Below, in pieces: positions 3,274-46,865 of a DNA stretch of 64,000 nucleotides. The position numbers were made by a program, and so were the translations under genes. Within the stretch, counting starts at the first letter, position 1, and the number at the start of each line of letters is the position of its first letter. The notes under the pieces were generated by a model that did no database searches, was not told the origin of the DNA, and saw only the letters and a program-made list of their open reading frames with translations. Origin of the DNA: Phaeosaccion multiseriatum. Taxonomy: Eukaryota > Protista > Ochrophyta, other classes. The stretch lies in assembly GCA_965112735.1 (NCBI GenBank), contig OZ218958.1:2976001-3040000 (forward strand), in the 5' to 3' direction.

Positions 3274-4728
3274 TCAGTTCTCGCAGTCGCAGGGGTGCCC
3301 ATTGGCATGCACCCACTGCTTGATCTCCTCAAGGACACTGCCCCTGACGTCCCACTGTTCACCAGCTTCCTCCTCCTCTCTCCTGATGACCTCTGGACAG
3401 ACACTCCCATCCCACGGACAGCCCACCTCTTCGGAGCGGAGCCACTGCAGCATTTCCAGGCTCTTGCCTCCTTCAAGTGCCGCTCTGCATACGTCAGGGG
3501 TCCAATCACAGAACTCACGCGCGTTGGCATGCAGCCACCGCAGAGCGTCGAAATGGCCGAGAAGGGCAGCAGTCCGAGCTCCCCTCCTCCAATGGCCGAA
3601 AAGGGCAGCCTTCCGAGCTCCCTTCCTCCACCAACTGCCCTCCTCCGCTCCCTCCAGCTCAGCCCTGACCTTGGGATTGTTCAGCAGCCATGCCAGCGCA
3701 GAGATGTGCCCATAATGAATAGCACAGAGCCACACATACTCATCAAAGGGGGCGTTCACGTCATCCGACAGAAGCCACTCCAGCAGTTGCAAGTCCCCCC
3801 TCCCCGCAGCAACATTGCAGACCTCCACATTCCACGGGCATTTCCCCTCCTTGGTGTCAGCCGAGTCCTCTGAGCGCAGCCACTTGAGCACATGCAGGCT
3901 GTGCCGCTCGTTTCTCGATGCCCCTTCGCACACCTCCTCATCCCAGGGACAGCCCATGTGATGAAGGGCCTTGCACATGCTCACATCTCCATACTGAGCA
4001 GCGGCCCTGAATGTTTCGACTGTAAGCTCGTAGCCGTGCCTCCTAGCCCAGTACACACGATCGATGGAGGCAACTACACTTGCTTGGCTCGTCGTGGCTA
4101 CGTGTTCCACGATGTAGTACCCCCTCCACGCCTTGCACACCGTCGCCACGAAAGCGTACTCCCCCTTTCCCACGAGGTCCATCACCTTTCCATACACTTC
4201 CTCCATACCAAAGGCGCTCGCACAGGCGGCCGAGCCAGGAAGGGGAAGTCGATGAGATGTAGCACGTCCAATGGTTCCACTCTCTCCGCCGGAGGTCGAA
4301 CGTCGCCGCTTGCTTCCCCCCCTCCTCTCTCTCCCTGCCTTCCCCTCCTCCACCTCAGCGTCCGGATTGTGGGGGCCGCGGCTTCTGGGCGCTGCTGAGG
4401 GTTGTACTTCGAGGCGGAGGAGGATCAGTTCCTTCTCTCTCTCCAGCGCCCTCTCTTTTCTCTTCTCGTCTAATAACTTTGCCTCCTTCTCCATCTCGCG
4501 TAACTTCTCGTCCCTCTCGTGAACCTCCATTCTCATTTGCTTCTTCTCCTCTCTCAAAGCTTGGAGGTGCATCAACAGCTCCTTCCTCACCCCCTCCCTC
4601 TCACCATCCGCTGCTGGTGCTGCTCCTCCCAAGCTCAGCGCCAGGTAGCTGCCCTGCGCGCTCAACGCCTGCTCCACTGCCTCCTCCTTCCTACTCACTG
4701 TTGCGATACATGCATGTATGTCCTCCAT
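3274..4728 (-). CDS. Ankyrin-like (CPWD-type) repeat protein, subtype A1, 484 aa, with N-terminal coiled coil and F-box-like motif
   Basis: Intronless ORF from ATG 4728 (MEDIH). Motifs: EYAFVATVCKAWR, GCPWDEEVCEGA, AAGRGDLQLLEWLL, LQWLRSEEVGCPWD. Confidence 0.85.
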   Translation of the reverse strand: MEDIHACIATVSRKEEAVEQALSAQGSYLALSLGGAAPAADGEREGVRKELLMHLQALREEKKQMRMEVHERDEKLREMEKEAKLLDEKRKERALEREKELILLRLEVQPSAAPRSRGPHNPDAEVEEGKAGRERRGGSKRRRSTSGGESGTIGRATSHRLPLPGSAACASAFGMEEVYGKVMDLVGKGEYAFVATVCKAWRGYYIVEHVATTSQASVVASIDRVYWARRHGYELTVETFRAAAQYGDVSMCKALHHMGCPWDEEVCEGASRNERHSLHVLKWLRSEDSADTKEGKCPWNVEVCNVAAGRGDLQLLEWLLSDDVNAPFDEYVWLCAIHYGHISALAWLLNNPKVRAELEGAEEGSWWRKGARKAALFGHWRRGARTAALLGHFDALRWLHANAREFCDWTPDVCRAALEGGKSLEMLQWLRSEEVGCPWDGSVCPEVIRREEEEAGEQWDVRGSVLEEIKQWVHANGHPCDCEN

Positions 4729-4990
4729 GATGGAATCGTAAGACAAAAAGGCCGATTGTTTGTTGCCCCCCCCTCTTGCTTCCAGCCCTCGGAGCTGTGA
4801 GCCCTCTACGAACCTAGCACCAACACGTCAAGTCAAATCAGAAATTTCAAATTTCGAAATTTCGAAATTTCATCAGTCGGTCTACACCACTGATTATAAG
4901 TATCGCAGAGACGCTGGAAAGGGGGAAGGAGAGAGAGAGAGTACATTGAAGGGCCGAAGGAAGGGAAGAAGGGGGGGGGGGGGGAATGTG
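4729..4990. promoter_or_regulatory. Putative bidirectional promoter of the Ank/FNIP pair (type A, tandem GAAATTTC)
   Basis: Divergent ATGs at 4728 and 4991. GAAATTTC-AAATTTC-GAAATTTC-GAAATTTC at 4841-4871. Confidence 0.55.
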
Positions 4991-6622
4991 ATGGAAGAAA
5001 GCCATGAAGAGACTGGTGGAGCGGGGGGAAATTTGCCAGAGCGCACCAGTCTCAGCAGCAGCGGGCCGGCGGCATTGAGGGTGGTTGCTGGCCGTGTTTC
5101 GAACAAGGCTCTGTGGGGCGTATGCAAGGAGGTCGACAAGTTAACCTCCCGCGGATTGGTGATCAACGCCGACATGCCCCAAGCTATCCAGTCGCGTGTG
5201 CTGAGCATGCTGAAGCAGCAGCAGCAGCGGGAGCGCGAGGAGACTCAACGCCTTGCTGCGGCTTCCTCTCCTCCTCCCGCCTCCATGCAGGGAAGACATG
5301 CCGGGGAAGGGCTTCGAAGGTCAGGGAGGATTAGGGCGAGGCAGCCGGACCATGGTATGGCGGGCTCCTTTCGCGTCAAGGCGGTGCGCCTCGGCATCCA
5401 ATATCAAGACGCTGACGAGCTGACTCCTGCTGATGGGGCTCTTGCTGTCAAAGTGTTGGCACTGCTGCCACTCTTGGTCAAGCGTGTGGGGTTTTCGGAG
5501 TTCTTCGATGCGTGCCGCGTTGTTGTACCGAGCGGCGTGGAGGAGGTGGAGTTTGCACGGGACTCAAGGTTCAACAGGCCAATCGTTCTCCCTTCCTCGC
5601 TGAAGAAAGTGAATTTTGGAGAACACTTCAATCAGGCTGATTTGGTGCTACCAAGCTCTCTGGAGGAGGTGGAGTTTTCAAGCCTCTCAAGGTTCAACAG
5701 GCCAGTCGTTCTCCCCCCCTCGCTGAAGAAGGTCACTTTTGGAGAACACTTCGATCAAGCTGATTTGGTGCTACCAAGCTCTCTGGAGGAGCTGGAATTT
5801 GTATGGAACTCATTGTTCAACAGGCCAATCGTTCTTCCCCCCTCGCTGAAGAAGGTCACTTTTGGAAAAGACTTCGATCAGGCTGGTTTGGTGCTACCAA
5901 GCTCTCTGGAGGAGCTGGAGTTTGCATGGAACTCAAACTTCAACAGGCCAATCGCTCTGCCTTCCTCGCTGAAGAAGGTCACTTTTGGAGAACACTTCGA
6001 TCAGGCTGATTTGGTGCTACCAAACTCTCTGGAGGAGCTGGATTTATGGGACTCAAGGTTCAACATGCCAATCGCTCTCCCGTCCTCGCTGAAGAAGGTC
6101 GCTTTTGGAGATTGCTTCGATCATGCTGATTTGGTGCTACCAAGCTCTCTGGAGGTGCTGGAGTTTTCAGAGGAGTCATTGTTCGACAGGCCTATCGTTC
6201 TCCCTTCCTCGCTGAAGAAGGTCACTTTTGGAGAGTTCTTCGATCAGGCTGATTTGGTGCTACCAAGCTCTCTGGAGGTGCTGGAGTTTCCATGGATCTC
6301 AGAGTTCAACAGGCCAATCGTTCTTCCCCCGTCGCTGAAGGAGGTCACTTTTGGAGGTGGATTTAATCAGCATGTGGTCCTTCCCAATGGTGTGGAGGAG
6401 GTGGAAATGGGGCGTGACTTTAACCTCCCCCTGGACCTCCCTCCCTCTCTGCGGGCTCTTACACTGAGTCCTGTATACTCCTGCCCTCTTCCGAGCCTAC
6501 CTGCTGGGCTGAAGAAGCTTACGGTGGGGGTGGGGTACCCGCTGCCTGCAGATCTACCCGAGGGGCTTCAGGTACACGACCATAACTTTGAAGGATTAAT
6601 CACTACTTTTCAAGTCTACTAG
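4991..6622 (+). CDS. FNIP-repeat protein copy 2, 543 aa
   Basis: Intronless ORF with 7 FNRPIxLPxSLKKVxFGxx units alternating with FDQADLVLPSSLEELEFxxxSx units (123-bp period). Confidence 0.9.
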   Translation: MEESHEETGGAGGNLPERTSLSSSGPAALRVVAGRVSNKALWGVCKEVDKLTSRGLVINADMPQAIQSRVLSMLKQQQQREREETQRLAAASSPPPASMQGRHAGEGLRRSGRIRARQPDHGMAGSFRVKAVRLGIQYQDADELTPADGALAVKVLALLPLLVKRVGFSEFFDACRVVVPSGVEEVEFARDSRFNRPIVLPSSLKKVNFGEHFNQADLVLPSSLEEVEFSSLSRFNRPVVLPPSLKKVTFGEHFDQADLVLPSSLEELEFVWNSLFNRPIVLPPSLKKVTFGKDFDQAGLVLPSSLEELEFAWNSNFNRPIALPSSLKKVTFGEHFDQADLVLPNSLEELDLWDSRFNMPIALPSSLKKVAFGDCFDHADLVLPSSLEVLEFSEESLFDRPIVLPSSLKKVTFGEFFDQADLVLPSSLEVLEFPWISEFNRPIVLPPSLKEVTFGGGFNQHVVLPNGVEEVEMGRDFNLPLDLPPSLRALTLSPVYSCPLPSLPAGLKKLTVGVGYPLPADLPEGLQVHDHNFEGLITTFQVY

Positions 6623-7530
6623 AATGTCCCGTGCCGATTTCGACAGTGTACCAACCGCATGGGTCCGCGGGAGCGGAGGCGAAAGTAAGCCCTGCTAACC
6701 TGCCCCACCCACCCCCTCCACTCCTCCCTTCGGCTGCGGTGCGACAACCCAGTGCCTTCTTGGACTATCTCCCTCATCCACACTGCCTGCCTGCTCTCAG
6801 AGTGTCTGCAGTCCCAAGCCTCGACTCGCCCAGGCCAAGAGAGAGTCCACGAAGGCTGCCACCGTCCGCCGCTGCCGCCACGTGAGGCGCGCCCTCTCTT
6901 CCTTGAGCACAAGGGCAATCTCCACGCTCGAAGCTTGACGCCGCTGCTGTACCACCAACTGTCGCTGCTGGCGCCGGAGCTGACTGTGCTGGAGGCTGTT
7001 TGCCGCAGCGGTGCCCTCAGTGGCAGCAGACGGGGCGACGGAGAGGAGTGTCACCAGCAGCAGAATAGGGGCGGCATCGTCCTCGTCTTGCTCGCCGTCC
7101 CCGTCCGGGCCTCCCTCAGCCTCGCCATTGCCCGCACCAGCATCAGGGCCACGCGCACCCGCACCATCGTCCCCTCCTCTCCAAGCCGCCACCGCCGCTG
7201 CTGTTGTACCACCAACTGCTAGTGGTGCTTGAGGCTGCCCAATGTACACACCTGCCACTGTGCCCTTTTCCCAAGCGGGATAGCACGTTGGTGATACAGC
7301 AAATGCTGCGAGCCCACCCTCGACGGTCAGCTCCTCCTCCTCTGACTCTTTGCTCTCTCAGAGGAGCCGCAGCAAACAGTCCTACGGGGCGCTCTCCCTC
7401 CAACACCTACACCCATCCACCGAGCCACATACACATGGACGGTGCGCGGCTCCAAAACATCGTGCGACCACACCCCAAACCGAAAGAGGACGAGACTGAG
7501 TCAAGTACGCCTCCCCCACCCCGCCGGCGC

Positions 7531-7531
<1 letters not shown>

Positions 7532-7561
<30 letters not shown>

Positions 7562-7602
7562 TCAGGATCAGGATCAGGATCAGGAGCAGGATCAGGAGCA
7601 GG
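7532..7602. repeat. CAGGAG/CAGGAT hexamer microsatellite (also ~23570-23650, ~36122-36190, ~47798-47908)
   Basis: Directly visible; length and order differ per copy. Confidence 0.9.
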
Positions 7603-7696
7603 AGGAAGGCTCGCTCCGTCAGAGGCTCGCCTTGCATCTAGCGTCCAACGCTGGAAGCGGCACTGGCTGTAACTGTTTTGAAACTGTTCAAGTCCG

Positions 7697-8442
7697 TCAC
7701 CAGGGGGGGCGAGTCATGGACATGGTGGCTTGTCCGGCGTCCACCGCTCCGACGGCGGCCTTCTTGAGACGCAACCCTCGCCCCACAAAGAGAGACCCGG
7801 CCACAGACAGGGTGGAGTCAGCCTGTGACATCACAGGTATTGCACACAAGAGTAAGTCAAGCGTAGAGCTGTAGAGTGTAGCATGATAGCGTTTAGGTTA
7901 GAGCCATACGCACGTACACACACACACACGCGCGCGCGCGCGCGCTCGCACATTGGTGTGGTACTCAGTCAGCCAGTCAGTTGGTCAAGTCAGTCAGTCA
8001 GTCAGTCAGTCAGTGGCTTCAATGGCTGAGTAATTCAGTTGGTGGCTGAGTCAGTCAGTCAGTCAGTCAGTCAGTCAGTCAGTGGCTGAGTAATTCAGTT
8101 GGTAGCTGAGTCAGTCAGTGCGTCATCAGACAGGGAGGTACACATTTGGACCGGTAGATAGGCCAATGGAGGGAGAGAGAGGTGGGGGGGGGGGGGGGTG
8201 GACTGGCAGGCACAGAACCACACAAGAGGATGTGTACTGGGGAGGCACTCACATAGGCCTGAGGTGTCCACTTGTTAGCCTTCGTAGCGCCACTGCTGGC
8301 AGGGTCGATTGCTCCCTCTGCAAAGGGAGAACCGACAGGGGGTGAGGGGCGTGAGGGGGGTGGGTGGGTGGGTGTACTTGTCACAAGCAGGTTCAGCTCG
8401 GTGCACTTGCACAGAGAATGTGAGAGAGAGAGAGAGAAAGAC

Positions 8443-8489
<47 letters not shown>

Positions 8490-11400
8490 CAGGCCGGGCC
8501 AGGCCAGGCCACCAGATCAAACGAGTGGGAAAGAGGAGTCCGTGAGCGTATTTGGCTTGGCCTCTTGGCCCTCCATGCTCTCTCTCCTCTGCTCTCCCTC
8601 GTGTTTGTTGTTCAACTCATCTCTCCTCGTGCTTGTTGCTGCTTACCTTGGGCAGCGTCCCCAGGGGGGAGGTTGGTCTTGTGCCAGAGGGTGGCGTCGT
8701 AGGGCATCTCTCCCCTGTTGCGGGGGGTGGGCGAGGGGTTGGGTGAGGTATGGCCAGGTGTGGAGCAACGACAGAAACCCAGCGCACACGCACACACGCA
8801 CACACGCACACACGTACACACACAAGCAAGTAGGACCTTCCGTGAAACAAGTTGTGAAGTCCACACACTACAACCTTCCTCCACTCCCCCCCTCTCTCCC
8901 TTCGTCCCTCCCTCCCTCCCTCTCTGGCCCATGTCCCTCTCACTCACCCTCTTCCGCTGTTGATGAACTGCGTCAGAGGCGACGGCGGGCGATTGCCCCA
9001 CTCCATCGTCGCGGAGAAAGTCTCTCCAAGCCCCACCGTCTCCGGAGAGTATCCGGTCTGTTGCAGCCTCCGCCTCAGGTCCTGACGCACCGGAGGGGAG
9101 AGCCGTATTCAGGGAGAGAGAGAGGGAGTGGGCGAGGGGAGGGAGGGAGGGGGGGAGGGAGGGAGGAAGTGAGGGAGGGAGGGAGAGTGGAACGGAGAGA
9201 TACAGGGAGGGAGGGAGGGAGGGAGGGAGGGAGGGAGGGAGGGAGGGAGGGAAAATCTGTCCTTAGACCTCTGTGAGTGCGTGAGCGTCCTCCTTACGTA
9301 AGCATGCGTGTGTACCTGCATGCTTCCCGACGAGGAGGGGGTGCCCCGGGTGGTGACGAGCTTACCCCTGGCTGTCTGTGTGTGTGCGTGCGTGTGCTGC
9401 GTGTGCCCTCCACGCCGAGAGGCTGCATACACACAGAGCAGGGAAGGGTGGAGGGGGGCGTCAGGGCCATGCGCGCACGCCCGTAGGCATTGGGTAAACC
9501 GGCAGGCAAGAAGAGGGCACAATCTTACACCTTGATGTGCTGTAAGAACAGGAGTGTATACAGCATACACATGCTCTGATATGCTCTGCGGCTGAAAGTG
9601 AGGGCCCTCCCCCCCCCCCTCGAATACACAGTCTGCCTGGACAGTTTCAGTTTTCATTTCAGTTTCAGTGTCAGATGATTGGGTACAGTACTCACTTTGC
9701 CTGGAGGAGGCGGCGGTGTAGTCAGACTGCATCCGACGGAGCTCTCTGTGAAGTGCCATCTGTGTAACCGCCTCCTCCGCGATGGTGTCTGGGGAGGGGG
9801 AAGAGGGGGAGGAGGGAGGCAGAACCCAAACCGAGACAAAGCGCACACACACACACACACATATATATTCGAGGAGAGTTGGGGGCATAGAGGTGAGGTG
9901 TACGGGAATAAGACTTTTAATGCTGACCAGTGGGCAACAACAACGGCTACCCACCACCACCACCACCGCCACCACCATTGGTTGCCATCCCACCCCCTCT
10001 CTCACCGTCCTTGGCCACGACGTCTCTCTTGAGCTTGAGCACTCCCTCCTTGGTGAGGACCATCTCCTCGTGCTGCGCATCCATCTCCCCCCTGAGGGCC
10101 GCGTTCACCTTCTTCTGCGCCGTCAGCTCCACGTCCTTCAGCTGGGAGTGAATGAGTGAGTGAGTGCGTGTGTGGGTGCGCGGGTGGGGTGGATGGGTGT
10201 GTGCGTGGGTGCGTGGGTGGGTGGGTGGGTGGGTAGGTGGATGTGTTTCGAAAGGCGTATTTCCCCATTTGGTTGAGTTCATTGTGAGCGAAGGGGCATG
10301 ACGAGAGGAAGGGGGGGAGGTGACAAGAGAGGATTGCCTGCCTTCGGTGGCATGACACATTTCTATGCGAGCATAGGTAAGCTTCCGTCACTACTCAAGT
10401 CAACCCGCGTTGAGATGGCGTGCATGTTATGTCTCCATCCATGCCTCTGCTCCCGTGCTGACAGGGGTGGGTGAGGCCAAAAGGCACACGCAGTCCTCAC
10501 CCTGAGCTTCGCCTCCATGTCCCGTACACGTGCCTCGGCCTCTAACCACTTGGTCTCTGCATCCTGCACAGTTTGATTCTAAAGGAAGGGATAAGAGAGG
10601 AGGAGGAGGAGGAGGAGGAGGAGGAGGAGGAGGAGGAGGAGGAGGAGGAGGAGGAGGACGTGAGAAGAGCTCAATATGTTCGAGCAGAGGGAGGGAGCAA
10701 GCAGGACAGAGAGCGCAGCGCATTAAGTGTTCGAGTCGTTGGGGACACAAACAATGAGCACATGTGCTCCATGAAACGCCTTGCAATACACCAAAGCGTG
10801 TCATCCCCGCTCGTCCCTTCCCCTCTCACACCCTCTCTTTCGGTCCTGTTCCTCTCTCACTCACTCACGCACTCAATCACTCACCGCCTCCCTCCTTCCC
10901 TCCTTCCTTCCCTCCCTCCCTCCCTCCCTCCGTCCGTCCTCTGTCCTGTCCTGCCACCTACCGCCTCCTTGCCCTGAAGCATGAGTTTGTCCGTCCGATG
11001 GAGGTCCTGGAGCCGCATGCTCCTCTCCTGCAGCCACCGCTCCTCACTAAGCTTGGCCTTGCCTTCGAGCTTGGTACGGTGCTCCAGTAGCCCCCCAAGG
11101 TCGTGCTTCAGCGTCGATATCTGTGAGGGCCGGGAGGTCCAGCGGAAGGGAAGGGGGGGGTGGGGTGAATGAGGGCAAGGGAGGCCTTACACAGCCAAGC
11201 TCGTATCGGCCATCTCTCTCGTAAGGGTTGACGACGGAGGATTCTTCACAAAGACAAACAGATCTGGAGGCATATGGTGGGCACACACACAGAGACAGAC
11301 AGACAGATAGAGAGGCACATGCGGAGACGGGCAGACAGGCAGACAGACACAAAACAGATGGGATGGAAAATTGAAGGCATTGGCTAAGCACCCACCTCGT

Positions 11401-12518
11401 GCTCCATGAGGCGCATGCGCTTCTTCTGCCCCTCCCTGGCCACGTTCTCGATCTTCGCGGCCTTGTCGTAGCGAGCCACCTTGGCGAGGGCTTGCACATG
11501 CTGTGGGGAGAGGGGAGGGGGGGGGGGGGTGAGGAGAGAAAAGTTGAGGACGAGAAAAGATAAATACGTGGTGCGGAGAGAAAGAGTGAGAGGGGAGGGA
11601 GGGAGTGAAAATGGGTGCGGGGAAAGAGAGGATGAGAAGAGAGAGAGGATATGGTGACCTGCAGAGAGAGAGTATGAGAGGGGAGTGCAAAGAAGAGTGA
11701 AAAGAAGAGTGTAGCACCCTTGTGCGCGAGCAATGGGATGGATGTACGCGTACCCACCTCAGATTTCAGTACCGATAAACTCTCCTCGAGCGCGTCTGCC
11801 CTCCGAACACTTTGGCTCAGCTTCGCTCGCACGGCCTCCTGCACCGAGCGGGTTGAGAGATGGGTAGACGCAGAAGCAAGCACAGAATGGATGGATGGAT
11901 GGTCGGATAACATCAGAGCGACTGGCTCCTAACCCAAAAGGATGATGAAGCTCGCCCGAATCAGAGTCTGAGGGAGAAAGAGAGCGAGCGCCAGAGCGAG
12001 AGGAGCGCGAGGGGCCCCACTCCACCTTGGTGCTTTTCCGTACCGCTTCTTGATCGAGGTCAGCGTGCCCGCTCCTGTACACCTTGATGTCGCGCTCCTG
12101 AGCTTCGTAATCCTCCTAGAACGAGGAGAGAATGGAGAGGGAAAGGCAAGAAAGGGTTGGGGAGGAGGAGGGAGGGGAGGAGAGGACAATACAAGGGGAC
12201 CAGCCAAGAGAAGAGAGTAGACTGGATGATGAGGCAGGATGGTATAGGGAAGGAGAAGGGGGGTAGTAGGAACCATCCTGATGTGTCTGCTTTGCTCGTG
12301 AACCAAGAAAGAAAGGCTAGACTCCCTGAGCTTCTCCTCCGGCCTTCGGTGCTCGAGCCATCGCCACTCGCGTCTATGCTATGTATATTGATATCGTATA
12401 TTTCTCGCGCCCCTCTTTACTATTTACGACCCACCTGTAAGCGCTTGTACTTTGTCTCCACCTTCTCCAGCTCCTCCAGCCTCTTTCGGAGACGGCCCAG
12501 GTCCGCCTTGGTAGCCAT
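7697..12518 (-). CDS. Multi-exon (about 14 exons) coiled-coil protein, copy 1
   Basis: GT-AG exons join in frame: MATKADLGRLRKRLEELEKVETKYKRLQ / HRREWRW... / EDYEAQERDIK... / EAVRAKLSQS... / HVQALAK... / ISTLKHDL... / DAETKWLE... / LKDVELTAQKK... / ... / ADSTLSVAGSLFVGRGLRLKK...PPW*. Confidence 0.7.
7965..8120. repeat. Intronic (TCAG)n compound microsatellite (present in all four coiled-coil gene copies)
   Basis: Directly visible. Confidence 0.9.
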
Positions 12519-12726
12519 TCCTGCCGCCTGCATATTGCAGCCCCATCACAGACGGGCTCAAGATCGGCTCAATCAAGAAGGGTCACAGTTTCAGGATTCC
12601 CAACTGTGATTGGACAACCACACACTCACTCGATGCCAATGCGGGAGGTTTGATCGTCCGCCGCTGAGTCCCTCCATCTCGCTCTCCGAGCACGAGAGGC
12701 CATACATATACACTGCTTCTGGCTCA

Positions 12727-14277
12727 TCAGTCCTCGCAGTCGCAGGGGTGCCCATTGGCATGCACCCACTGCTTGATCTCCTCAAAGACACTGCCCCTGA
12801 CGTCCCACTGTCCACCTGCGTCCTCATCCTCTCTCCTGATGGCCTCTGGACAGACACTCTCGTCCCACGGACAGCCCACCTCTTCTGAGCGGAGCCACTG
12901 CAGCATTTCCAGGCTCTTGCTATATTTAACTGCACATCTGCAAGCGTCAGGGGTCCAATCACAAAGCTCACTCGCATTGGCATGCAGCCACCGCAGAGCG
13001 TCAAAACGGCCGAAAATGGCAGCAGTCAGAGCTCCCCTCCTCCACGAACTGCCCTCCTCCGCTCCCTCCAGCTCAGCCCTGACCTTGGGACTGTTCAGCA
13101 GCCATGCCAGCACAGAGAGGTGCCCATTCCTAACAGCAGAGATCCAATTCCAGTGCTGAAAGGGCGCATTCACGTCATCCAACAGAAGCCACTCCATCAG
13201 TTGCAAGTCCCCCCTCCGCGCAGCAGCATCGCAGACCCTCCAATCCCACGGGCATATCCCCTCCTTGCTGTCAGCCGAGTCCTCTGAGCGCAGCCACTTG
13301 AGCACACGCAGGCTGTGCCGCTCGTTTCTCGATGCCGATTCGCACACCTCCTTATCCCAGGCACAGCCCATGTGATGGAGGGCCTTGCACATGCCCACAT
13401 CTCCATACTGAGCAGCGGCCCTGAACGTTTTGACGGTAAGCTCGTAGCCGTGCCTCCTGGCCCAGTACACACGATCGATGGAGGCAACTACACTTGCTTG
13501 GCTCGTCGTGGCTGCGTACTCCACCATGTAATACCCCCGCCACTCCTTGCACACCGTCGCCACGAAAGCGTACTCCCCCTTTCCCACGAGCTCCATCACC
13601 TTTGCATACACTTCCTCCATACCAAAGGCGCTGGCACAGGCGCCCGAGCCAGGAAGGGGAAGTCGATGAGAGGCAGCACGTCCGCCATCTCCACCCTTTC
13701 TTCCGGAGGTCGAACGTCGCCGCTTTCCACCCCCCTTCCTGTCTCTCCCTGCCTTCCCCTCCTCCACCTCAGCGTCAGGATTGTGGGGGCCGCGGCTTCT
13801 GGGCGCTGCTGAGGGTTGTACTTCGAGGCGGAGGAGGATCACTTCCTTCTGCCTCTCCAGGGCCCTCTCTTTTGTCCTCTCGTCCAATAACTTTGCCTCC
13901 TTCTCCATCTCGCGTACCTTATCGTCCCTCTCGTGAGCCTTCTCTTTCGCCTTCTCGTCCCTCTCGTGAGCCTTCTCTTTCGCTTTCTCGTCCCTCTCGT
14001 GAGCCTTCTCTATCGCCTTCTCGTCCCTTTTCTGAGACTTCTTCTTCGCCTTCTCGTCCCTCTCTTTCGCCTTCTCCTCTCTCAGTTGCTTCTTCTCCTC
14101 TCTCAAAGCTTGGAGGTGCATCAGCAGCTCCTTCCTCACCCCCTCCCTCTCACCATCCGCTGCTGGTGCTGCTCCTCCCAAACTCAGACCCAGGTAGCTG
14201 CCCTGCGCGCTCAACGCCTGCTCCACTGCCTCCTCCTTCCTGCTCACTGCTGCGATACTTGCATGTATGTCCTCCAT
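12727..14277 (-). CDS. Ankyrin-like repeat protein, subtype B1, 516 aa, with expanded 11-aa coiled-coil repeat
   Basis: Intact ORF paralogous to A1, carrying ERDEKAKEKAH tandem repeats. Confidence 0.85.
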   Translation of the reverse strand: MEDIHASIAAVSRKEEAVEQALSAQGSYLGLSLGGAAPAADGEREGVRKELLMHLQALREEKKQLREEKAKERDEKAKKKSQKRDEKAIEKAHERDEKAKEKAHERDEKAKEKAHERDDKVREMEKEAKLLDERTKERALERQKEVILLRLEVQPSAAPRSRGPHNPDAEVEEGKAGRDRKGGGKRRRSTSGRKGGDGGRAASHRLPLPGSGACASAFGMEEVYAKVMELVGKGEYAFVATVCKEWRGYYMVEYAATTSQASVVASIDRVYWARRHGYELTVKTFRAAAQYGDVGMCKALHHMGCAWDKEVCESASRNERHSLRVLKWLRSEDSADSKEGICPWDWRVCDAAARRGDLQLMEWLLLDDVNAPFQHWNWISAVRNGHLSVLAWLLNSPKVRAELEGAEEGSSWRRGALTAAIFGRFDALRWLHANASELCDWTPDACRCAVKYSKSLEMLQWLRSEEVGCPWDESVCPEAIRREDEDAGGQWDVRGSVFEEIKQWVHANGHPCDCED

Positions 14278-14539
14278 GATGGAATCGTAAGACAAAAAGG
14301 CCGATTGTTTGTTGCCCCCCCCCGTTGCTTCCAGCCCTCGGAGCTGTGAGCCCTCAACGAATCTAGCACCAACACGTCAAGTCAGGTCCTTTGACCATTC
14401 CCCCCCTGATTCCCGATCAGTCTACACCACCCCACCACAGTGAAGTAGCGCAGTGACGCTGGAAAGGGGGAAGGAGAGAGAGAGTACATTGAAGGGCACC
14501 ACGTCGAAGGGAGGTGAAACGAAGGGGGGTGGCATCGTG

Positions 14540-16149
14540 ATGGAAGAAAGTCGTCAAGAGACTGATGGAGCGGGGGGGAATTTGCTAGAGCGCACCAATC
14601 TCAGCAGCAGCGGGCCGGCGGCATTGAGGGTGGTTGCTGGCCGTGTTTCGAACAAGGCTCTGTGGGGCGTATGCAAGGAGGTCGACAAGTTAACCTCCCG
14701 CGCTTTGGTGATCAACGCCGACATGCCCCAAGCTGTCCAGTCGCGTGTGCTGAGTATGCTGAAGCAGCAGCAGCAGCGGGAGCGCGAGGAGACTCAACGC
14801 CTTGCTGCGGCTTCCTCTCCTCGTCCCGCCTCCATGCAGGGAAGACATGCCGGGGAAGGGTTTCGAAGGTCGGGGAGGATTAGGGCGAGGCAGCCGGACC
14901 ATGGTATGGCGGGCTCCTTTCGCGTCAAGGCGGTGCGCCTCGGTATCCAACGTGAAGACGCTGACGAGCTGACTCCTGCTGATGGGGCTCTTGCTCTCAA
15001 AGTGTTGGCACTGCTGCCACTCTTGGTCAAGCGTGTGGGTTTTCGGAGTTCTTCGATGCGTGCCGCGTTGTTGTACCGAGCGGCGTGGAGGAGGTGGAGT
15101 TTGCACGGGACTCAAGGTTCAAGAGGTCAATCGTTCTCCCTTCCTCACTGAAGAAGGTCAGTTTTGGAAAAGCCTTCAATCAGGCTGATTTGGTGCTGCC
15201 AAGCTCTCTGGAGGAGCTGAAGTTTGCGCGGGACTCAAAGTTCAACAGGCCAATCGTTCTCCCTTCCTCACTGAAGAAGGTCGCCATTGGAAGGTATTTT
15301 GATCAGGCTGATTTGGTGTTGCCAAGCTCTCTGGAGGAGCTGGGGTTTTCAGAGTACTCAAGGTTCAACAGGCCAATCGTTCTCCCTTCCTCGCTGAAGA
15401 AGGTCACTTTTGGAGAACTCTTCGATCAGGCTGATTTGGTGCTACCAAGCTCTCTGGAGGTGCTGGAGTTTTCATGGGACTCAGAGTTCAACAGGCCAAT
15501 CGATCTCCCTTCCTCGCTGAAGATGGTCACTTTTGGAGAACTCTTCGATCAGGCTGATTTGGTGCTACCAAGCTGTCTGGAGGGGCTGGAGTTTGCAGCT
15601 GCCTCAGAGTTCAACAGGCCAATCGATCTCCCTTCCTCACTGAAGAAGGTCATTTTTGGATTCCTCTTCGATCAGGCTGATTTGGTGCTACCAAGCTCTC
15701 TGGAGGAGCTGGAGTTTCCATGGACCTCAGAGTTCACCAGGCCAATCGTTCTCCCTTCCTCGCTGAAGAAGGTCACTTTTGGAGAACACTTCGATCAGGC
15801 TGATTTTGTGCTACCAAGCTCTCTGGAGGTGCTCAAGTTTGCACGGGAATCAGCGTTCAACAGGCCAATCGTTCTTCCCCCCTCGCTGAAGAAGGTCGCT
15901 TTTGGAGATGGATTCAATCAGCATGTGGTCCTTCCCAATGGTGTCGAGGAGGTACGCATGGGGCGTGACTTTAACCTCCCCCTGGACCTCCCTCCCTCTC
16001 TGCGGACTCTTACACTGAGTCCTGAATACTCCTGCCCTCTTCCGAGCCTACCTGCTGGGCTGAGGGAGCTTATGGTGGGGATGGGGTTCCCTCTGCCTGC
16101 AGATCGACCCGAGGGGCTTCAGGTACACTACCATGCACATTATTTTTAA
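14540..16149 (+). pseudogene. FNIP-repeat protein copy 3, frameshifted
   Basis: GGG at 15037-15039 where paralogues have four bases splits the gene into ORFs 14453-15151 and 15085-16149. Could be a homopolymer sequencing error. Confidence 0.75.
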
Positions 16150-16412
16150 CACTCGATTTGCGTAAGAATCGCCCAAATCGCCCGTTTTTTAGAAGTCGGG
16201 CGGCATGGGGGAGTGCTCTTGCAGAAATGCTTAAAAACAGTAATTAAGTAAGTGATGAAAGCCGAAAGACTATGTGTCGGTAGGCATCTCAAAGAGCTAT
16301 TTTGCTATTTTGCTATTTACGAAGAGCTATAGCGCTTCTCCCAGCGTCAATTTGCGGACTTCGTGAAAACATTATTGGGGGCGATTTGGGCGATTCTTAC
16401 GCAAATCGAGTG
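16150..16412. mobile_element. 263-bp MITE with perfect 34-bp TIRs and TTAA duplication (piggyBac-like)
   Basis: TTAA|CACTCGATTTGCGTAAGAATCGCCCAAATCGCCC...GGGCGATTTGGGCGATTCTTACGCAAATCGAGTG|TTAA; absent from the other five paralogous sites. Confidence 0.9.
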
Positions 16413-18307: not shown

Positions 18308-18365
<58 letters not shown>

Positions 18366-24456: not shown

Positions 24457-24495
<39 letters not shown>

Positions 24496-33652: not shown

Positions 33653-35131
33653 ATGGAAGAAAGTCATCAAGAGACCAATGGAGCGGGGGAAAATTTGCCA
33701 GAGCGCACCAGTCTCAGCAGCAGCGGGCCGGCGGCATTGAGGGTGGTTGCTGGTTGTGTTGGTGTTTCAAACAAGGCTCTGTGGGGCGTATGCAAGGTGG
33801 TCGACAAGGAAACCTCACGCGCTTTGGTGATCAACGCCGACATGCCCCAAGCTATCCAGTCGCGTGTGCTGAGTATGCTGAAGCAGCAGCAGCAGCGGGA
33901 GCGCGAGAAGTCTCAACGCCGTGCTGCGGCTTCCTCTCCTCCTCCCGCCTCCATGCGGGGAAGACACTCCCTGGAAGGGCTTCGAAGGTCGGGGAGGATT
34001 AGGGCGAGGCAGCTGGACCATGGTATGGCGGGCTCCTTTCGCGTCAACGCGGTGCGCCTCGGCATCCAACGTCAAGACGCTAACGAGCTGACTCCTGCTG
34101 ATGGGGCTCTTGCTGTCAAAGTGTTGGCACTGTTGCCACTCTTGGTCAAGCGTGTGGGGTTTTCGGAGTTCTTCAATGCGTGCCGCGTTGTTGTACCGAG
34201 GGGCGTGGAGGAGGTGGAGTTTGCACGGGACTCAAGGTTCAACAGGCCAATCGTTCTCCCTTCCTCGCTGAAGAAGGTCACTTTTGGAAAATTCTTCAAT
34301 CGGGCTGATTTGGTGCTGCCAAGCTCTCTGGAGGAGCTGGAGTTTTCAGATGACTCAAGGTTCAACAGGCCTATCGATCTCCCATCCTCCCTGAAGAAGG
34401 TCACTTTTGGCTGGCCCTTCGATCAGGCTGATTTGGGGCTACCAGGCTCTCTGGAGGAGCTCAACTTTTCAGTGGACTCAAATTTCAACCAGCCAATCGC
34501 TCTCCCTTCCTCGCTGAAGAAGGTCACATTTGGCCGGCACTTCAATCAGGCTGGTTTGGAGCTACCAAGCTCTCTGGAGGAGCTGGAGTTTTCACACAAA
34601 TCACAGTTCAAGAGGCCAATCGGTCTCCCTTCCTCACTGAAGAAGGTCACTTTTGGAGAATGGTTCAATCAGGCTGGTTTGGTGCTACCAAGCTCTCTGG
34701 AGGTGCTGATGTTTCCACGGGACTCAGTGTTCAACAGGCCAATCGTTCTCCCTTCCTCGCTGAAGAAGGTCACTTTTGGTAGAGACTTCGATCAGGCTGG
34801 TTTGAAGCTACCAAGCTCTCTGGAGGTGCTGGATTTATGGGACTCAAGGTTTAACAGGCCAATCGCTCTTCCCCCCTCGCTGAAGAAGGTCACTTTTGGA
34901 TCTAGATTCAATCAGCCTGTGGTCCTTCCCAATGGTGTCGAGAAGGTACACATGGGGCGTGACTTTAACCTCCCCCTGGACCTCCCTCCCTCTCTGTGGT
35001 TTCTTTCACTGAGTTATCGGTACTCCTGCCCTCTCTCGAGCCTACCTGCTGGCCTGAGGAGGCTTAGGGTGGGGGTGGGGTTCCCTCTGCCTGCAGTTCT
35101 ACCCGAGGGGCTTGACGTAACCCGACATTAA
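33653..35131 (+). CDS. FNIP-repeat protein copy 5, 492 aa (alternative in-frame ATG at 33602)
   Basis: Intact ORF with 6 units and mostly private variable residues. Confidence 0.9.
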   Translation: MEESHQETNGAGENLPERTSLSSSGPAALRVVAGCVGVSNKALWGVCKVVDKETSRALVINADMPQAIQSRVLSMLKQQQQREREKSQRRAAASSPPPASMRGRHSLEGLRRSGRIRARQLDHGMAGSFRVNAVRLGIQRQDANELTPADGALAVKVLALLPLLVKRVGFSEFFNACRVVVPRGVEEVEFARDSRFNRPIVLPSSLKKVTFGKFFNRADLVLPSSLEELEFSDDSRFNRPIDLPSSLKKVTFGWPFDQADLGLPGSLEELNFSVDSNFNQPIALPSSLKKVTFGRHFNQAGLELPSSLEELEFSHKSQFKRPIGLPSSLKKVTFGEWFNQAGLVLPSSLEVLMFPRDSVFNRPIVLPSSLKKVTFGRDFDQAGLKLPSSLEVLDLWDSRFNRPIALPPSLKKVTFGSRFNQPVVLPNGVEKVHMGRDFNLPLDLPPSLWFLSLSYRYSCPLSSLPAGLRRLRVGVGFPLPAVLPEGLDVTRH

Positions 35132-36279
35132 TTTTATTTAAAAAAAAACAAAAACAATAATGAATAATTATCGTTCAAGCCCATAGAATGTCCCGTGCAG
35201 ATTTCGACAGTGTAGCAACCGCATGGGTCCGCGGGAGCGGAGGCGAAAGTGAGCCCTGCCATCTTACCCCCCCCCCCCCCCACCCCCTCCACTCCTCCCT
35301 TCGGCAGTGGTGCGACAACCCAGTGCCTTCTTGGACTCTCTTCGTCATCCTCACTGCCTGCCTGCTCTCAGTGTGTCTGCAGGCCCAAGCCTCGACTCGC
35401 CCACGCCAAGAGAGAGTCCACGAAGGCTGCCACCGTCTGCCGCTGCCGCCACGTGAGGCGCGCCCTCTCTTCCTTGAGCACAAGGGCAATCTCCACGCTC
35501 GAAGCTTGACGCCGCTGCTGTACCACCAACTGTCGCTGCTGGCGCCGGGGCTGACTGTGCTGGAGGCTGTTTGCCGCAGCGGTGCCCTCAGTGGCAGCAG
35601 ACGGGGCGACGGAGAGGAGCGTCACCAGCAGCAGAATAGGGGCGGCATCGTCCTCGTCTTGCTCGCCGGCCCCGTCCGGGCCTCCCTCAGCCTCGCCATT
35701 GCCCGCACCAGCATCAGGGCCACACGCACCGGCACCATCGGCCCGTCCCGAAGCTGCAGGACCCTCCTCTCTAAGCCGCCACCGCCGCCGTTGTTGTACC
35801 ACCAACTGCTAGTGGTGCTTGAGGCTGCCCAATGTACACACCTGCCACTGTGCCCTTTTCCCAAGCGGGATTGCACGTTGGTGATACAGCAAATGGTGCG
35901 AGCCCACCCTCGACGGTCAGCTCCTCCTCCTCTGACTCTTTGCTCTCTCAGAGGAGCCGCAGCAAACAGTCCTACGGGGCGCTCTCCCTCCAACACCTAC
36001 ACCCATCCACCGAGCCACATACACATGGACGGTGCGCGGCTCCAAAACATCGTGCGACCACACCCCAAACCGAAAGAGGACGAGACTGAGTCAAGTACGC
36101 CTCCCCCACCCCGCCGGGCAGCAGGAGCAGAAGCAGAAGCAGGATCAGGATCAGGATCAGGATCAGGAGCAGGATCAGGAACGGGAGCAAGGCTCGCTCC
36201 GTCAGAGGCTCGCCTTGCATCTAGCGTCCAACGCTGGAAGCGGCACTGGCTGTAACTGTTTTGAAACTGTTCAAGTCCG

Positions 36280-39797: not shown

Positions 39798-39835
<38 letters not shown>

Positions 39836-41062: not shown

Positions 41063-41270
41063 TCCTGCCGCCTGCCTATTGCAGCCCCATCACAGACGGG
41101 CTCAAGATCGGCTCAATCAAGAAGGGTCACAGTTTCAGGATTCCCAACTGTGATTGGACAACCACACACTCACTCGATGCCAATGCGGGAGGTTTGATCG
41201 TCCGCCGCTGATTCCCTCCATCTCGCTCTCCGAGCACGAGAGGCCATACACATACACTGCTTCTGGCTCA

Positions 41271-42250
41271 TCAGTCCTCGCAGTCGCAGGGGTGCCCATT
41301 GGCATGCACCCACTGCTTGATCTCCTCAAAGACACTGCCCCTGACGTCCCACTGTCCACCTGCGTCCTCATCCTCTCTCCTGATGGCCTCTGGACAGACA
41401 CTCTCGTCCCACGGACAGCCCATCTCTTCAGAGCGGAGCCACTGCAGCATTGCTAGGCTCTTGCCGTATTTAACTGCATACTGGCATACGTCAGGGGTCC
41501 AATCACAAAGCTCACTCGCATTGGCATGCAGCCACCGCAGAGCGTCAAAACGGCCGAAAATGGCAGCCTTCCAAGCTCCTGCCCTCCACCCACTCCCCTC
41601 CTCCGCTCCGTCCAGCTTAGCCCTGACCTTGGGACTGTTCAGCAGCCATGCCAGCACAGAGAGGTGCCCATAATGAATAGCAGAGATCTAATTCCAGTGC
41701 TGAAAGGGCGCATTCACGTCATCCGACAGAAGCCACTCCAGCAGTTGCAAGTCCCCCCTCCGCGCAGCAGCATCGCAGACCCTCCAATCCCACGGGCATT
41801 TCCCCTCCTTAGCGTCAGCCGAGTCCTCTGAGCGCAGCCACTTGAGCACACGCAGGCTGTGCCGCTCGTTTCTCGATGCCGATTCGCACACCTCCTCATC
41901 CCAGGCACAGCCCATGTGATGGAGTGCCTTGCACATGCTCACATCTCCATACTGAGCAGCGGCCCTGAACGTTTCGACTGTAAGCTCGTAGCCGTGCCTC
42001 CTGGCCCAGTACACACGATCGATGGAGGCAACTACACTTGCTTGGCTCGTCGTGGCTGCGTACTCCACCATGTAGTACCCCTCCACTCCTTGCACACCGT
42101 CGCCACGAAAGCGTACTCCCCCTTTCCCACGAGCTCCATCACCTTTGCATACACTTCCTCCATACCAAAGGCGCTTGCACAGGCGCCCGAGCCAGGAAGG
42201 GGAAGTCGATGAGAGGCAGCACGTCCGCCATCTCCACTCTCTCCTCCGAA
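41271..42250 (-). pseudogene. Ankyrin-like repeat protein, subtype B3, truncated
   Basis: TGG>TAG stop at 41688, 1-nt frameshift near 42080, and 5' end removed at a deletion junction near 42255. Confidence 0.85.
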
Positions 42251-43590: not shown

Positions 43591-45045
43591 TCAGTTCTCG
43601 CAGTCGCAGGGGTGCCCATTGGCATGCACCCACTGCTTGATCTCCTCAAGGACACTGCCCCTGACGTCCCACTGTTCACCAGCTTCCTCCTCCTCTCTCC
43701 TGATGACCTCTGGACAGACACTCCCATCCCACGGACAGCCCACCTCTTCTGAGCGGAGCCACAACAGCATTTCCAGGCTCTTGCCTCCTTCAAGTGCCGC
43801 TCTGCATACGTCAGGGGTCCAATCACAGAACTCACGCGCGTTGGCATGCAGCCACCGCAGAGCGTCGAAATGGCCGAGAAGGGCAGCAGTCCGAGCTCCC
43901 CTCCTCCAATGGCCGAAAAGGGCAGCCTTCCGAGCTCCCTTCCTCCACCAACTGCCCTCCTCCGCTCCCTCCAGCTCAGCTCTGACTTTGGGATTGTTCA
44001 GCAGCCATGCCAGCGCAGAGATGTGCCCATAATAAATAGCACAGAGCCACACATACTCATCAAAGGGGGCGTTCACGTCATCCGACAGAAGCCACTCCAG
44101 CAGTTGCAAGTCCCCCCTCCCCGCAGCAACATTGCAGACCTCCACATTCCACGGGCATTTCCCCTCCTTGGTGTCAGCCGAGTCCTCTGAGCGCAGCCAC
44201 TTGAGCACATGCAGGCTGTGCCGCTCGTTTCTCGATGCCCCTTCGCACACCTCCTCATCCCAGGGACAGCCCATGTGATGAAGGGCCTTGCACATGCTCA
44301 CATCTCCATACTGAGCAGCGGCCCTGAACGTTTCGACTGTAAGCTCGTAGCCGTGCCTCCTAGCCCAGTACACACGATCGATGGAGGCAACTACACTCTT
44401 TTGGCTTGTCTTGGCTGCGTGTTCCAGGATGTAGTACCCTCTCCACTCCTTGCACACCGTCGCCACGAAAGCGTACTCCCCCTTTCCCACGAGCTCCATC
44501 ACCTTTGCATACACTTCCTCCATACCAAAGGCGCTCGCACAGGCGGCCGAGCCAGGAAGGGGAAGTCGATGAGATGTAGCACGTCCAATGGTTCCACTCT
44601 CTCCGCCGGAGGTCGAACGTCGCCGCTTGCTTCCCCCCCTCCTCTCTCTCCCTGCCTTCCCGTCCTCTACCTCAGCGTCCGGATTGTGGGGGCCGCGGCT
44701 TCTGGGCGCTGCTGAGGGTTGTACTTCAAGGCGGAGGAGGATCAGTTCCTTCTCTCTCTCCAGCGCCCTCTCTTTTCTCTTCTCGTCTAATAACTTTGCC
44801 TCCTTCTCCATCTCGCGTAACTTCTCGTCCCTCTCGTGAACCTCCATTCTCATTTGCTTCTTCTCCTCTCTCAAAGCTTGGAGGTGCATCAACAGCTCCT
44901 TCCTCACCCCCTCCCTCTCACCATCCGCTGTTGACGTTGCTCCTCCCAAGCTCAGCCCCAGGTAGCTGCCCTGCGCGCTCAACGCCTGCTCCACTGCCTC
45001 CTCCTTCCTGCTCACTGCTGCGATACTCGCACGTATGTCCTCCAT
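43591..45045 (-). CDS. Ankyrin-like repeat protein, subtype A3, 484 aa
   Basis: Intact ORF. Its N-terminal GLSLGGATSTA is shared with B2. Confidence 0.85.
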   Translation of the reverse strand: MEDIRASIAAVSRKEEAVEQALSAQGSYLGLSLGGATSTADGEREGVRKELLMHLQALREEKKQMRMEVHERDEKLREMEKEAKLLDEKRKERALEREKELILLRLEVQPSAAPRSRGPHNPDAEVEDGKAGRERRGGSKRRRSTSGGESGTIGRATSHRLPLPGSAACASAFGMEEVYAKVMELVGKGEYAFVATVCKEWRGYYILEHAAKTSQKSVVASIDRVYWARRHGYELTVETFRAAAQYGDVSMCKALHHMGCPWDEEVCEGASRNERHSLHVLKWLRSEDSADTKEGKCPWNVEVCNVAAGRGDLQLLEWLLSDDVNAPFDEYVWLCAIYYGHISALAWLLNNPKVRAELEGAEEGSWWRKGARKAALFGHWRRGARTAALLGHFDALRWLHANAREFCDWTPDVCRAALEGGKSLEMLLWLRSEEVGCPWDGSVCPEVIRREEEEAGEQWDVRGSVLEEIKQWVHANGHPCDCEN

Positions 45046-45293
45046 GATGGAATCGTAAGACAAAAAGGCCGATTGTTTGGTTGCCCCCCCCTCTTGCTTC
45101 CAGCCCTCGGAGCTGTGAGCCCTCTACGAACCTAGCACCAACACGTCAAGTCAAATCAGAAATTTCGAAATTTCCCGATTCCCGATCAGTCGGTCTACAC
45201 AGTGAAGTATCGCAGAGACGCTGGAAAGGGGGAAGGAGAGAGAGAGTACATTGAAGGGCCGAAGGAAGGGAAGAAGGGGGGGGGGGGAATGTG

Positions 45294-46865
45294 ATGGAAG
45301 AAAGCCATGAAGAGACTGGTGGAGCGGGGGGAAATTTGCCAGAGCGCACCAGTCTCAGCAGCAGCGGGCCGGCGGCATTGAAGGTGGTTGCTGGTCGTGA
45401 TGGTGTTTCAAACAAGGCTCTGTGGGGCGTATGCAAGGTGGTCGACAAGGAAACCTCACGCGCTTTGGTGATCAACGCCGACATGCCCCAAGCTATCCAG
45501 TCGCGTGTGCTGAGTACGCTGAAGCAGCAGCAGCGGGAGCGCGAGAAGTCTCAACACTCCCAGGAAGGGCTTCGAAGGTCGGGAAGGATAAGGGCGAGGC
45601 AGCTGGACCATGGTATGGCGGGCTCCTTTCGCGTCAAGGCGGTGCGCCTCGGCATCCAACGCCAAGACGCTGACGAGCTGACTCCTGCTGATGGGGCTCT
45701 TGCTGTCAAAGTGTTGGCACTGCTGCCACTCTTGGTCAAGCGTGTGGGGTTTTCGGAGTTCTTCGATGCGTGCCGCGTTGTTGTACCGAGCGGCGTGGAG
45801 GAGGTGGAGTTTGCACGGAACTCAAGGTTCAACAGGCCAATCGTTCTCCCTTCCTCACTGAAGAAGGTCACTTTTGGAAAATGGTTCAATCAGGCTGATT
45901 TGGTGCTACCAAGCTCTCTGAAGGTGCTGGACTTTTCAATACTCTCAGATTTCAACAGGCCAGTCGTTCTCCCCCCCTCGCTGAAGAAGGTCACTTTTGG
46001 AAATTACTTCGATCAAGCTGATTTGGTGTTACCAAGCTCTCTGGAGGAGCTGGAATTTGTATGGAACTCAATGTTCAACAGGCCAATCGTTCTTCCCCCC
46101 TCGCTGAAGAAGGTCACTTTTGGAGAAGACTTCGATCAGGCTGGTTTGGTGCTACCAAGCTCTCTGGAGGAGCTAAAGTTTGCATGGAACTCAAACTTCA
46201 ACAGGCCAATCGCTCTCCCTTCCTCGCTGAAGAAGGTCACTTTTGGAGAACACTTCGATCAGGCTGATTTGGTGCTACCAAGCTCTCTGGAGGAGCTGGA
46301 TTTATGGGACTCAAGGTTCAACAGGCCAATCGCTCTCCCGTCCTCGCTGAAGAAGGTCGCTTTTGGAGATTGCTTCGATCATGCTGATTTGGTGCTACCA
46401 AGCTCTCTGGAGGTGCTGGAGTTTTCAGAGCACTCAGAGTTCGACAGTCCAATCGTTCTCCCTTCCTCGCTGAAGAAGGTCACTTTTGGAATAGCCTTCG
46501 ATCAGGCTGATTTGGTGCTACCAAGCTTTCTGGAGGAGCTGCAGTTTTCATGGGACTCAAGCTTCAACAGGCCAATCGTTCTTCCCCCGTCGCTGAAGGA
46601 GGTCACTTTTGGAGGTGGATTTAATCAGCATGTGGTCCTTCCCAATGGTGTGGAGGAGGTGGAAATGGGGCGTGACTTTAACCTCCCCCTGGACCTCCCT
46701 CCCTCTCTGCGGGCTCTTACACTGAGTCCTGTATACTCCTGCCCTCTTCCGAGCCTACCTGCTGGGCTGAAGAAGCTTACGGTGGGGGTGGGGTACCCGC
46801 TGCCTGCAGATCTACCCGAGGGGCTTCAGGTACACCAACATCGCTTTGAAGGATTAATCGATTAA
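45294..46865 (+). CDS. FNIP-repeat protein copy 6, 523 aa
   Basis: Intact ORF with 7 units; a mosaic of copies 2, 4 and 5. Confidence 0.9.
   Translation: MEESHEETGGAGGNLPERTSLSSSGPAALKVVAGRDGVSNKALWGVCKVVDKETSRALVINADMPQAIQSRVLSTLKQQQREREKSQHSQEGLRRSGRIRARQLDHGMAGSFRVKAVRLGIQRQDADELTPADGALAVKVLALLPLLVKRVGFSEFFDACRVVVPSGVEEVEFARNSRFNRPIVLPSSLKKVTFGKWFNQADLVLPSSLKVLDFSILSDFNRPVVLPPSLKKVTFGNYFDQADLVLPSSLEELEFVWNSMFNRPIVLPPSLKKVTFGEDFDQAGLVLPSSLEELKFAWNSNFNRPIALPSSLKKVTFGEHFDQADLVLPSSLEELDLWDSRFNRPIALPSSLKKVAFGDCFDHADLVLPSSLEVLEFSEHSEFDSPIVLPSSLKKVTFGIAFDQADLVLPSFLEELQFSWDSSFNRPIVLPPSLKEVTFGGGFNQHVVLPNGVEEVEMGRDFNLPLDLPPSLRALTLSPVYSCPLPSLPAGLKKLTVGVGYPLPADLPEGLQVHQHRFEGLID

Follow-up and report, generated by a model that had tools for sequence, protein, structure and literature searches.

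A 64,000-nucleotide stretch of the Phaeosaccion multiseriatum genome (assembly GCA_965112735.1, contig OZ218958.1, positions 2,976,001 to 3,040,000 of the forward strand; hereafter the window) carries five head-to-head gene pairs. Each consists of an ankyrin-type gene (Ank) on the minus strand, whose product starts with MEDI, and a gene for an FNIP-repeat protein on the plus strand, whose product starts with MEES. The pairs had been noticed in an earlier reading of the same sequence, referred to below as the original prediction, and all ten of their ATG codons were confirmed. The pairing is real and far exceeds what chance would give. Every pair in the window goes back to one ancestral cassette, and we think it probable that the locus is a lineage-specific, recently amplified birth-and-death cassette of two recognition-type repeat proteins whose pairing was inherited by co-duplication.

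One cassette behind the five gene pairs

Self-BLAST of the window has revealed a tandem segmental array with units of about 16 kb that are 95–96% identical (426–10625 vs. 16440–26689, 95%; 10630–13977 vs. 26661–29977, 96%), so the proposed tandem amplification of the pairs is borne out. Two subtypes of pairs, A and B, alternate within each unit and are separated by the regions P and Q (Table 1). The A and B contexts share homology only across a cassette of about 4 kb. It contains the two genes with their spacer, 77 bp lying 3′ of the Ank stop codon and, downstream of FNIP, a 555-bp segment X. In every copy it starts abruptly at TTGATCGTCC, 77 bp past the ankyrin stop, and ends at CATCGTCCCCTCC, 555 bp past the FNIP stop. 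No terminal inverted repeats, no direct terminal repeats beyond the 7-nt ATCGTCC and no target-site duplication were found at these ends, and the flanking contexts visible in the window are only two. Since all copies come from one cassette with identical ends, the five pairs amount to one observation of pairing and not to five independent recurrences. The head-to-head layout recurs because the cassette was copied as a single piece.

The window holds six ankyrin-type loci, on the minus strand only, and six FNIP loci (located by tblastn), on the plus strand only. The distance between the two ATG codons is 262, 262, 243 and 248 bp in pairs A1, B1, A2 and A3, respectively, and 3474 bp in pair B2 due to the insertion that splits it, in agreement with the original prediction. 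Uninterrupted open reading frames (ORFs) of about 500 codons were retained by eight of the ten full-length genes. All three A-type pairs are intact, while the B-type pairs are decaying: FNIP-B1 carries a 1-bp deletion in a frame otherwise open for some 370 codons, Ank-B2 is frameshifted and the B-type ankyrin gene of unit III is truncated. As intact A pairs adjoin broken B pairs, the pairs are subject to birth-and-death turnover, which had also been anticipated.

GC content is about 0.58 across the window (range 0.55–0.62), and the sequence contains no N. Word depth of the contig suggests a multi-copy family. DNA-like contig sets matching the stretch cover genes and spacers equally and contain no splice-like joints.

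Alignment of all spacers has shown that their outer blocks are strongly conserved between A and B, with only the central ~50 bp being variable. Each subtype had been expected to travel with its own promoter and its own FNIP C-cap. This is correct for the C-cap, which together with the ankyrin repeat domain is the only part with a clear subtype signal, but only in part for the promoter, as the spacers are alike outside the central part and pair A3 has a central block shared with B2. This block (Ank 5′ end, spacer and FNIP 5′ end; 44850–45600) is closer to B2 (30030–30274, 33500–33980) than to A1 or A2, which suggests conversion or recombination between the subtypes across the shared promoter. 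Co-regulation of the two genes is plausible because the spacer is short and shared. In A1 the centre of the spacer contains an AT-rich AAATTTCG tandem, and a palindrome is located at 4842–4869.

Table 1. Features of the window. The ATG is at the right-hand coordinate of full-length Ank genes and at the left-hand coordinate of FNIP genes.
Feature	Coordinates	Strand	Evidence or remark
Segmental unit I (P – pair A1 – Q – pair B1)	426..16440		self-BLAST
Segmental unit II (P – pair A2 – Q – pair B2 with insertion)	16440..35199		self-BLAST; 95–96% identical to unit I
Segmental unit III	35199..~52956		self-BLAST; rearranged; start lacks the first spacer region and the A pair
Cassette of ~4 kb, copy A1	3197..7177		homology of A vs. 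B contexts
FNIP 3′ end, gene cut by the window start	1..402	+	tblastn with FNIP-A1 residues 135–543, 70% identity; 123-bp tandem at 7–249
Ank-A1, 484 aa	3274..4728	-	open ORF; Pfam Ank_4 1.7e-8
Shared divergent spacer A1, 262 bp, putative bidirectional promoter	4729..4990		alignment of all spacers
FNIP-A1, 543 aa	4991..6622	+	Pfam FNIP 1.5e-57; tandem repeat 5538–6356
Ank-B1, 516 aa, intact	12727..14277	-	45 extra coiled-coil residues
FNIP-B1	14540..16149	+	open apart from the loss of 1 bp in a G-run near 15036
Ank-A2, intact	19325..20779	-	protein 97% identical to A1
FNIP-A2, intact	21023..22657	+	units shuffled vs. A1
Ank-B2, frameshifted in the coiled-coil part	28731..30178	-	4-bp gap and 99-bp deletion vs. 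B1
Insertion of ~3.2 kb splitting the B2 spacer	30275..33500
FNIP-B2, intact, 492 aa	33653..35131	+	shorter by one double unit
Ank-B3, truncated, residues 147–484 only	41194..42248	-	joined at 42248/42261 to P-type sequence; no FNIP partner
Ank-A3, intact	43591..45045	-	5′ end like B2
FNIP-A3, intact, 523 aa	45294..46865	+

Within the B2 insertion, an element of about 2.7 kb (30738–33455) is bounded by perfect 33-nt terminal inverted repeats and contains no long ORF; it is probably a non-autonomous DNA transposon. An adjoining ORF fragment (30297–30701, plus strand) resembles a transposon protein (..STFAIETHGRLG..). The heptamer ATCGTCC is present in direct orientation at both cassette ends (3197–3210 and 7160–7177 in A1, with the same ends in the other copies). 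It may represent microhomology used by the founding duplication, or it may be a chance match (roughly 2%).

In the P and Q regions, searches for long ORFs, Pfam domains, tRNAs and Rfam matches were all negative. Region Q is present in four copies of about 5.5 kb (7200–12700, 23200–28650, 35800–41190 and 47450–52950) that were duplicated along with the cassette. Microsatellites and proline/serine-like low-complexity ORFs abound in it, and its GC skew is strongly positive.

Two repeat proteins and their variable positions

The plus-strand proteins match the Pfam FNIP model PF05725 with E-values of 1e-55 to 1e-61 (8–11 stretches in four genes). In FNIP-A1, an orphan N-terminal part of about 160 residues is followed by a leucine-rich repeat (LRR) solenoid of the FGxxFN type at residues 165–530. 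The AlphaFold2 (AF2) model of this protein has a predicted local distance difference test (pLDDT) score of 81, rising above 90 over the predicted solenoid. According to Foldseek, the closest structure is CroV588 of Cafeteria roenbergensis virus (CroV; PDB 6nyr; E = 6e-20, TM-score 0.55, 31% identity), a circular LRR protein, followed by 7zal (E = 3e-9). With motif units recognised by Pfam and a predicted solenoid fold like that of CroV588 and CroV539, the protein belongs to the FNIP/FGxxFN LRR family. For residues 1–200, an exhaustive HMMER search of 1.8 billion proteins has found a sole match, located in the first repeat, and PDB sequences gave none.

Repeats of the FNIP array come as 41-residue double units (123 bp) in which LPsSLKKVtFGxxFdQAdLv precedes LPsSLEeLeFxxxSxFNRPiv. 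The scaffold of these units does not vary, in contrast to the highly variable positions 12–13 (the xx of FGxxF) and 31–33/35. The two residues between FG and FN were reported to be the most variable ones in FNIP/FGxxFN LRR proteins (Huyton et al., 2022, PMC9525666). At positions 12–13 the proportion of nonsynonymous differences (pN) reaches 0.46–0.48, compared to a pN of 0.025–0.05 and a proportion of synonymous differences (pS) of 0.046–0.08 in the scaffold. The scaffold pN/pS ratio is 0.46, and the ratio of nonsynonymous to synonymous substitution rates (dN/dS, omega) for the whole gene is 1.0–1.2. These values agree with the variable, receptor-like protein envisaged in the original prediction.

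FNIP proteins of the A type are 87–92% identical to each other, and their repeat arrays are 87–96% identical vs. flanks of about 96–98% among the A units. Where the units of A1 and A3 are colinear, the six variable codons differ at 29 of 90 nucleotides and the remaining codons at 16 of 525 (Fisher test, 9e-16), a comparison in which only positions 12–13 were fixed a priori and positions 31–35 were chosen from the same data. The invariant scaffold together with the high pN at the variable codons indicates that the scaffold is constrained while the binding edge, as predicted by the structural model, is rapidly diversifying. Unit shuffling accounts for some of what distinguishes A1 from A2.

Comparison of A1 (5588–6320) with A3 (45846–46560), flanked by sequences about 97% identical, shows 32% of the nucleotides to differ in six codons of each unit. 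These codons are often changed at two or three nucleotides, and the codons adjoining them are unchanged. Such a pattern would be expected either from intense selection or from micro-conversion by other family members.

The C-terminal half of the minus-strand proteins is matched by Pfam Ank_4 and related models above the cutoff (E-values of 1e-7 to 1e-10). The AF2 model of Ank-A1 (mean pLDDT 73) predicts a long N-terminal coiled coil at residues 2–108 (helices 2–31 and 41–108), a disordered basic linker (110–172), a low-confidence three-helix stretch and then ankyrin repeats of the CPW type (222–480), formed by helical pairs with a pLDDT of 80–96. Foldseek matches of the protein to ankyrin-repeat structures are weak (E ~1e-3). 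The Pfam Ank models and the predicted ankyrin fold assign it to the ankyrin-repeat proteins. Residues 1–225 had no homologue in a word-based search of 5.8 billion proteins, and none was found among PDB sequences either. In Ank-B1 the coiled coil is lengthened by 45 residues through a 33-bp (11-residue) tandem present in 4.8 copies (13917–14076). The tandem has fewer copies in B2 and none in the A types, producing a length ladder.

The original prediction regarded the ankyrin protein as the conserved partner. This is true for the recent copies: Ank proteins of the A type are 96.5–97% identical to each other, and identity of Ank genes among the A units equals that of the flanks, about 96–98%. 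Whole-gene dN/dS is 0.4–0.8, with an omega of about 0.45 for the coiled coil. It is not true between the subtypes, where pN and pS of the ankyrin domain are about equal (~0.10). The changes between subtypes are concentrated in three repeats in a row, where they affect hairpin and helix-1 positions. These positions form the canonical binding groove of ankyrin repeats, known from the design of DARPins (designed ankyrin repeat proteins). Judging by sequence, the predicted groove is stable among recent copies and different between subtypes.

With Pfam, only Ank and FNIP models were found in the two proteins, and no NB-ARC, TIR, kinase, nuclease, other effector, signalling or death domain was detected. 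Inspection of the N-termini by eye revealed no obvious signal peptide in either protein. An F-box was considered on account of a VCK-type motif seen by eye and was not supported by any of the tests. The candidate segments of both proteins gave no Pfam match to PF00646 or PF12937 at E ≤ 10; a custom hidden Markov model built from six homologues carrying Pfam F-boxes scored them no better than shuffled sequences; and BLASTP of the two segments gave an E-value of 2.9. Their pLDDT in the AF2 models is 46–67 (Ank) and about 30 (FNIP). The motif is kept as a lead only.

Relatives and comparison with known systems

The best homologues outside this genome are merely 25–40% identical. Those of the ankyrin protein come from Raphidocelis, Tribonema, Mollivirus, Balamuthia and metagenome contigs; those of the FNIP protein come from dictyostelids, brown algae and contigs resembling giant viruses. 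A survey of relatives for the same divergent pairing had been suggested as a check. Of eight distant-homologue loci, from Tribonema, Scytosiphon and six metagenome or assembly contigs, none had it: the two families never occur there within 10 kb of each other, and the relatives are either single or organised into arrays of the same family. The viral and metagenome contigs searched contain no close relative, and a literature search has found nothing on head-to-head Ank/FNIP pairs. A JGI (Joint Genome Institute) metagenome contig (L007, 1–21428, GC content 0.58) carries nine same-strand tandem paralogues of the CPW-type ankyrin gene adjoining a hAT-type transposase gene; this array, from another organism or virus, contains ankyrin genes only.

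The FNIP proteins share the repeat motif LPxSLxxLxFGxxFNQ and the solenoid fold with the FNIP/FGxxFN LRR proteins of Cafeteria roenbergensis virus, mavirus, mimiviruses and dictyostelids (PMC9525666; PDB 6nyr, 7zal). Here as there, they form large paralogous families varying most at the two residues between FG and FN. They differ from those proteins in the alternation of two unit types within the 41-residue double unit, where the FxxxSxF loop of the second one is longer, in the orphan N-terminal 160 residues, in being encoded by an alga-like protist and in the fixed head-to-head arrangement of the gene with an ankyrin gene. The ankyrin protein has the consensus AAxxGxLxxLxWLrxxGCPWD in common with the CPW-type ankyrin families of green algae, Tribonema, Balamuthia and giant viruses such as Mollivirus (often F-box-Ank proteins), at 25–34% identity, and some of these relatives (P0012, P0061) also possess a coiled coil in front of the repeats. 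It differs from them in having no detectable F-box, in its N-terminal 225 residues without homologues and in the FNIP pairing.

The original prediction compared the pairs to the paired nucleotide-binding LRR (NLR) immune receptors of plants, such as RRS1/RPS4 and RGA4/RGA5, and proposed a sensor/effector or sensor/helper logic for them. The divergent layout with a short shared promoter region (243–262 bp in four pairs), a single repeat domain that evolves fast and birth-and-death clusters in tandem are indeed features of both. Nevertheless, no NB-ARC, TIR, coiled-coil NLR or integrated decoy domain is present here, and the likeness is confined to gene layout. Since the layout has a single origin, no effector domain was found and the pairing does not occur at the eight loci of relatives, neither the analogy with NLR pairs nor the sensor/effector logic is supported. 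With variable lymphocyte receptors and other hypervariable LRR repertoires the FNIP proteins share a constant LRR scaffold, variability on the predicted ligand-binding face and unit shuffling. Unlike variable lymphocyte receptors, these genes are complete in the germline, with nothing pointing to somatic assembly, and the products appear to be intracellular.

Origin and possible role of the cassette

According to the reading we consider probable, segmental tandem duplication and unequal recombination have lately amplified a two-gene cassette of about 4 kb, from whose ~250-bp spacer two uninterrupted ORFs are read in opposite directions. One ORF would code for an intracellular coiled-coil and ankyrin-repeat protein and the other for an FGxxFN (FNIP) LRR solenoid, both presumably acting as binding scaffolds devoid of a catalytic or signalling domain. 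The FNIP array would have diversified at the residues edging the concave face, with the scaffold retained, by selected point changes, by short conversion or unit shuffling among repeats, or by both. New copies would arise by duplication and die by frameshift, truncation or transposon insertion. The likely role of the two proteins is that of a rapidly evolving intracellular recognition repertoire like those of giant viruses and dictyostelids, possibly involved in host-virus conflict. Two points weigh against this reading: choosing the variable positions 31–35 from the tested data introduces an ascertainment bias, and the 1-bp deletion in FNIP-B1 may be an assembly error instead of a very recent frameshift.

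The two genes could also constitute an obligate functional pair, in which the FNIP protein senses a ligand (e.g., a viral protein) with the coiled-coil ankyrin protein as its helper or adaptor, both being expressed together from the promoter they share. Such a pair would fit well with the fixed divergent layout and the short, largely conserved spacer of both subtypes, with the exchange of both 5′ ends and the spacer between subtypes as one block, and with variable canonical binding positions in both proteins. We find it unlikely nonetheless, as all copies in the window go back to a single ancestor, neither protein has a signalling or death domain, homologues at the eight loci of other organisms are unpaired and one member is still intact in the broken pairs. 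The fullest version of this idea appears more doubtful still. It would have the cassette serve a stramenopile alga as a genuine two-component module for intracellular recognition: an FNIP-LRR sensor diversified in the germline and a dimerising ankyrin adaptor with a coiled coil, co-expressed from one promoter and co-evolving as cognate partners, e.g., against giant viruses.

Nor does a viral or mobile origin seem likely, in which a cassette derived from a giant virus or mobile element would be spreading selfishly and its genes would benefit that element (e.g., by manipulating host proteins) and not the host. Both genes are uninterrupted ORFs, the nearest structure is a CroV protein, look-alikes by sequence and features include Nucleocytoviricota, several of the homologue loci resemble giant-virus contigs, the sharp cassette ends have the ATCGTCC heptamer in common and word depth suggests many copies, all of which would suit such an origin. 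However, the ends are devoid of terminal inverted repeats and target-site duplications, no transposase, integrase or viral hallmark ORF was found in the window, GC content is the same as in the surroundings, no close relative is present in the viral or metagenome contigs searched and the two flanking contexts in the window are accounted for by one duplication. Assignment to a transposable element with passenger genes found no support, given the missing terminal repeats (beyond the 7-nt ATCGTCC) and target-site duplications and the two contexts visible in the window, and neither did assignment to an endogenous giant-virus region, given the long ORFs without hallmark domains, the GC content of 0.55–0.62 throughout and the viral contigs lacking a close relative. 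Neutrally decaying repeats with no present function, which could be read from a whole-gene omega of about 1 for FNIP and 0.4–0.8 for Ank and from the three broken B-type genes, are very improbable: eight ORFs of about 500 codons remain open, the FNIP scaffold has a pN/pS of 0.46 with change confined to six codons per unit, and the omega of the coiled coil is about 0.45.

Overall, the locus can be considered a good example of a recognition-type cluster under birth-and-death evolution and not a demonstrated new immune system. If the two-component module did turn out to be true, it would represent paired immune-receptor logic built without NLR domains. To our knowledge, hardly any protist systems for antiviral or non-self recognition have been described, and we know of no function assigned to the FNIP-LRR and CPW-ankyrin families, huge as they are in giant viruses and some protists. 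The LRR partner displays a very sharp hypervariability, with a roughly tenfold excess of change in six codons per unit, and two such families locked in one amplified divergent cassette offer a concrete place to test binding and cooperation between them.

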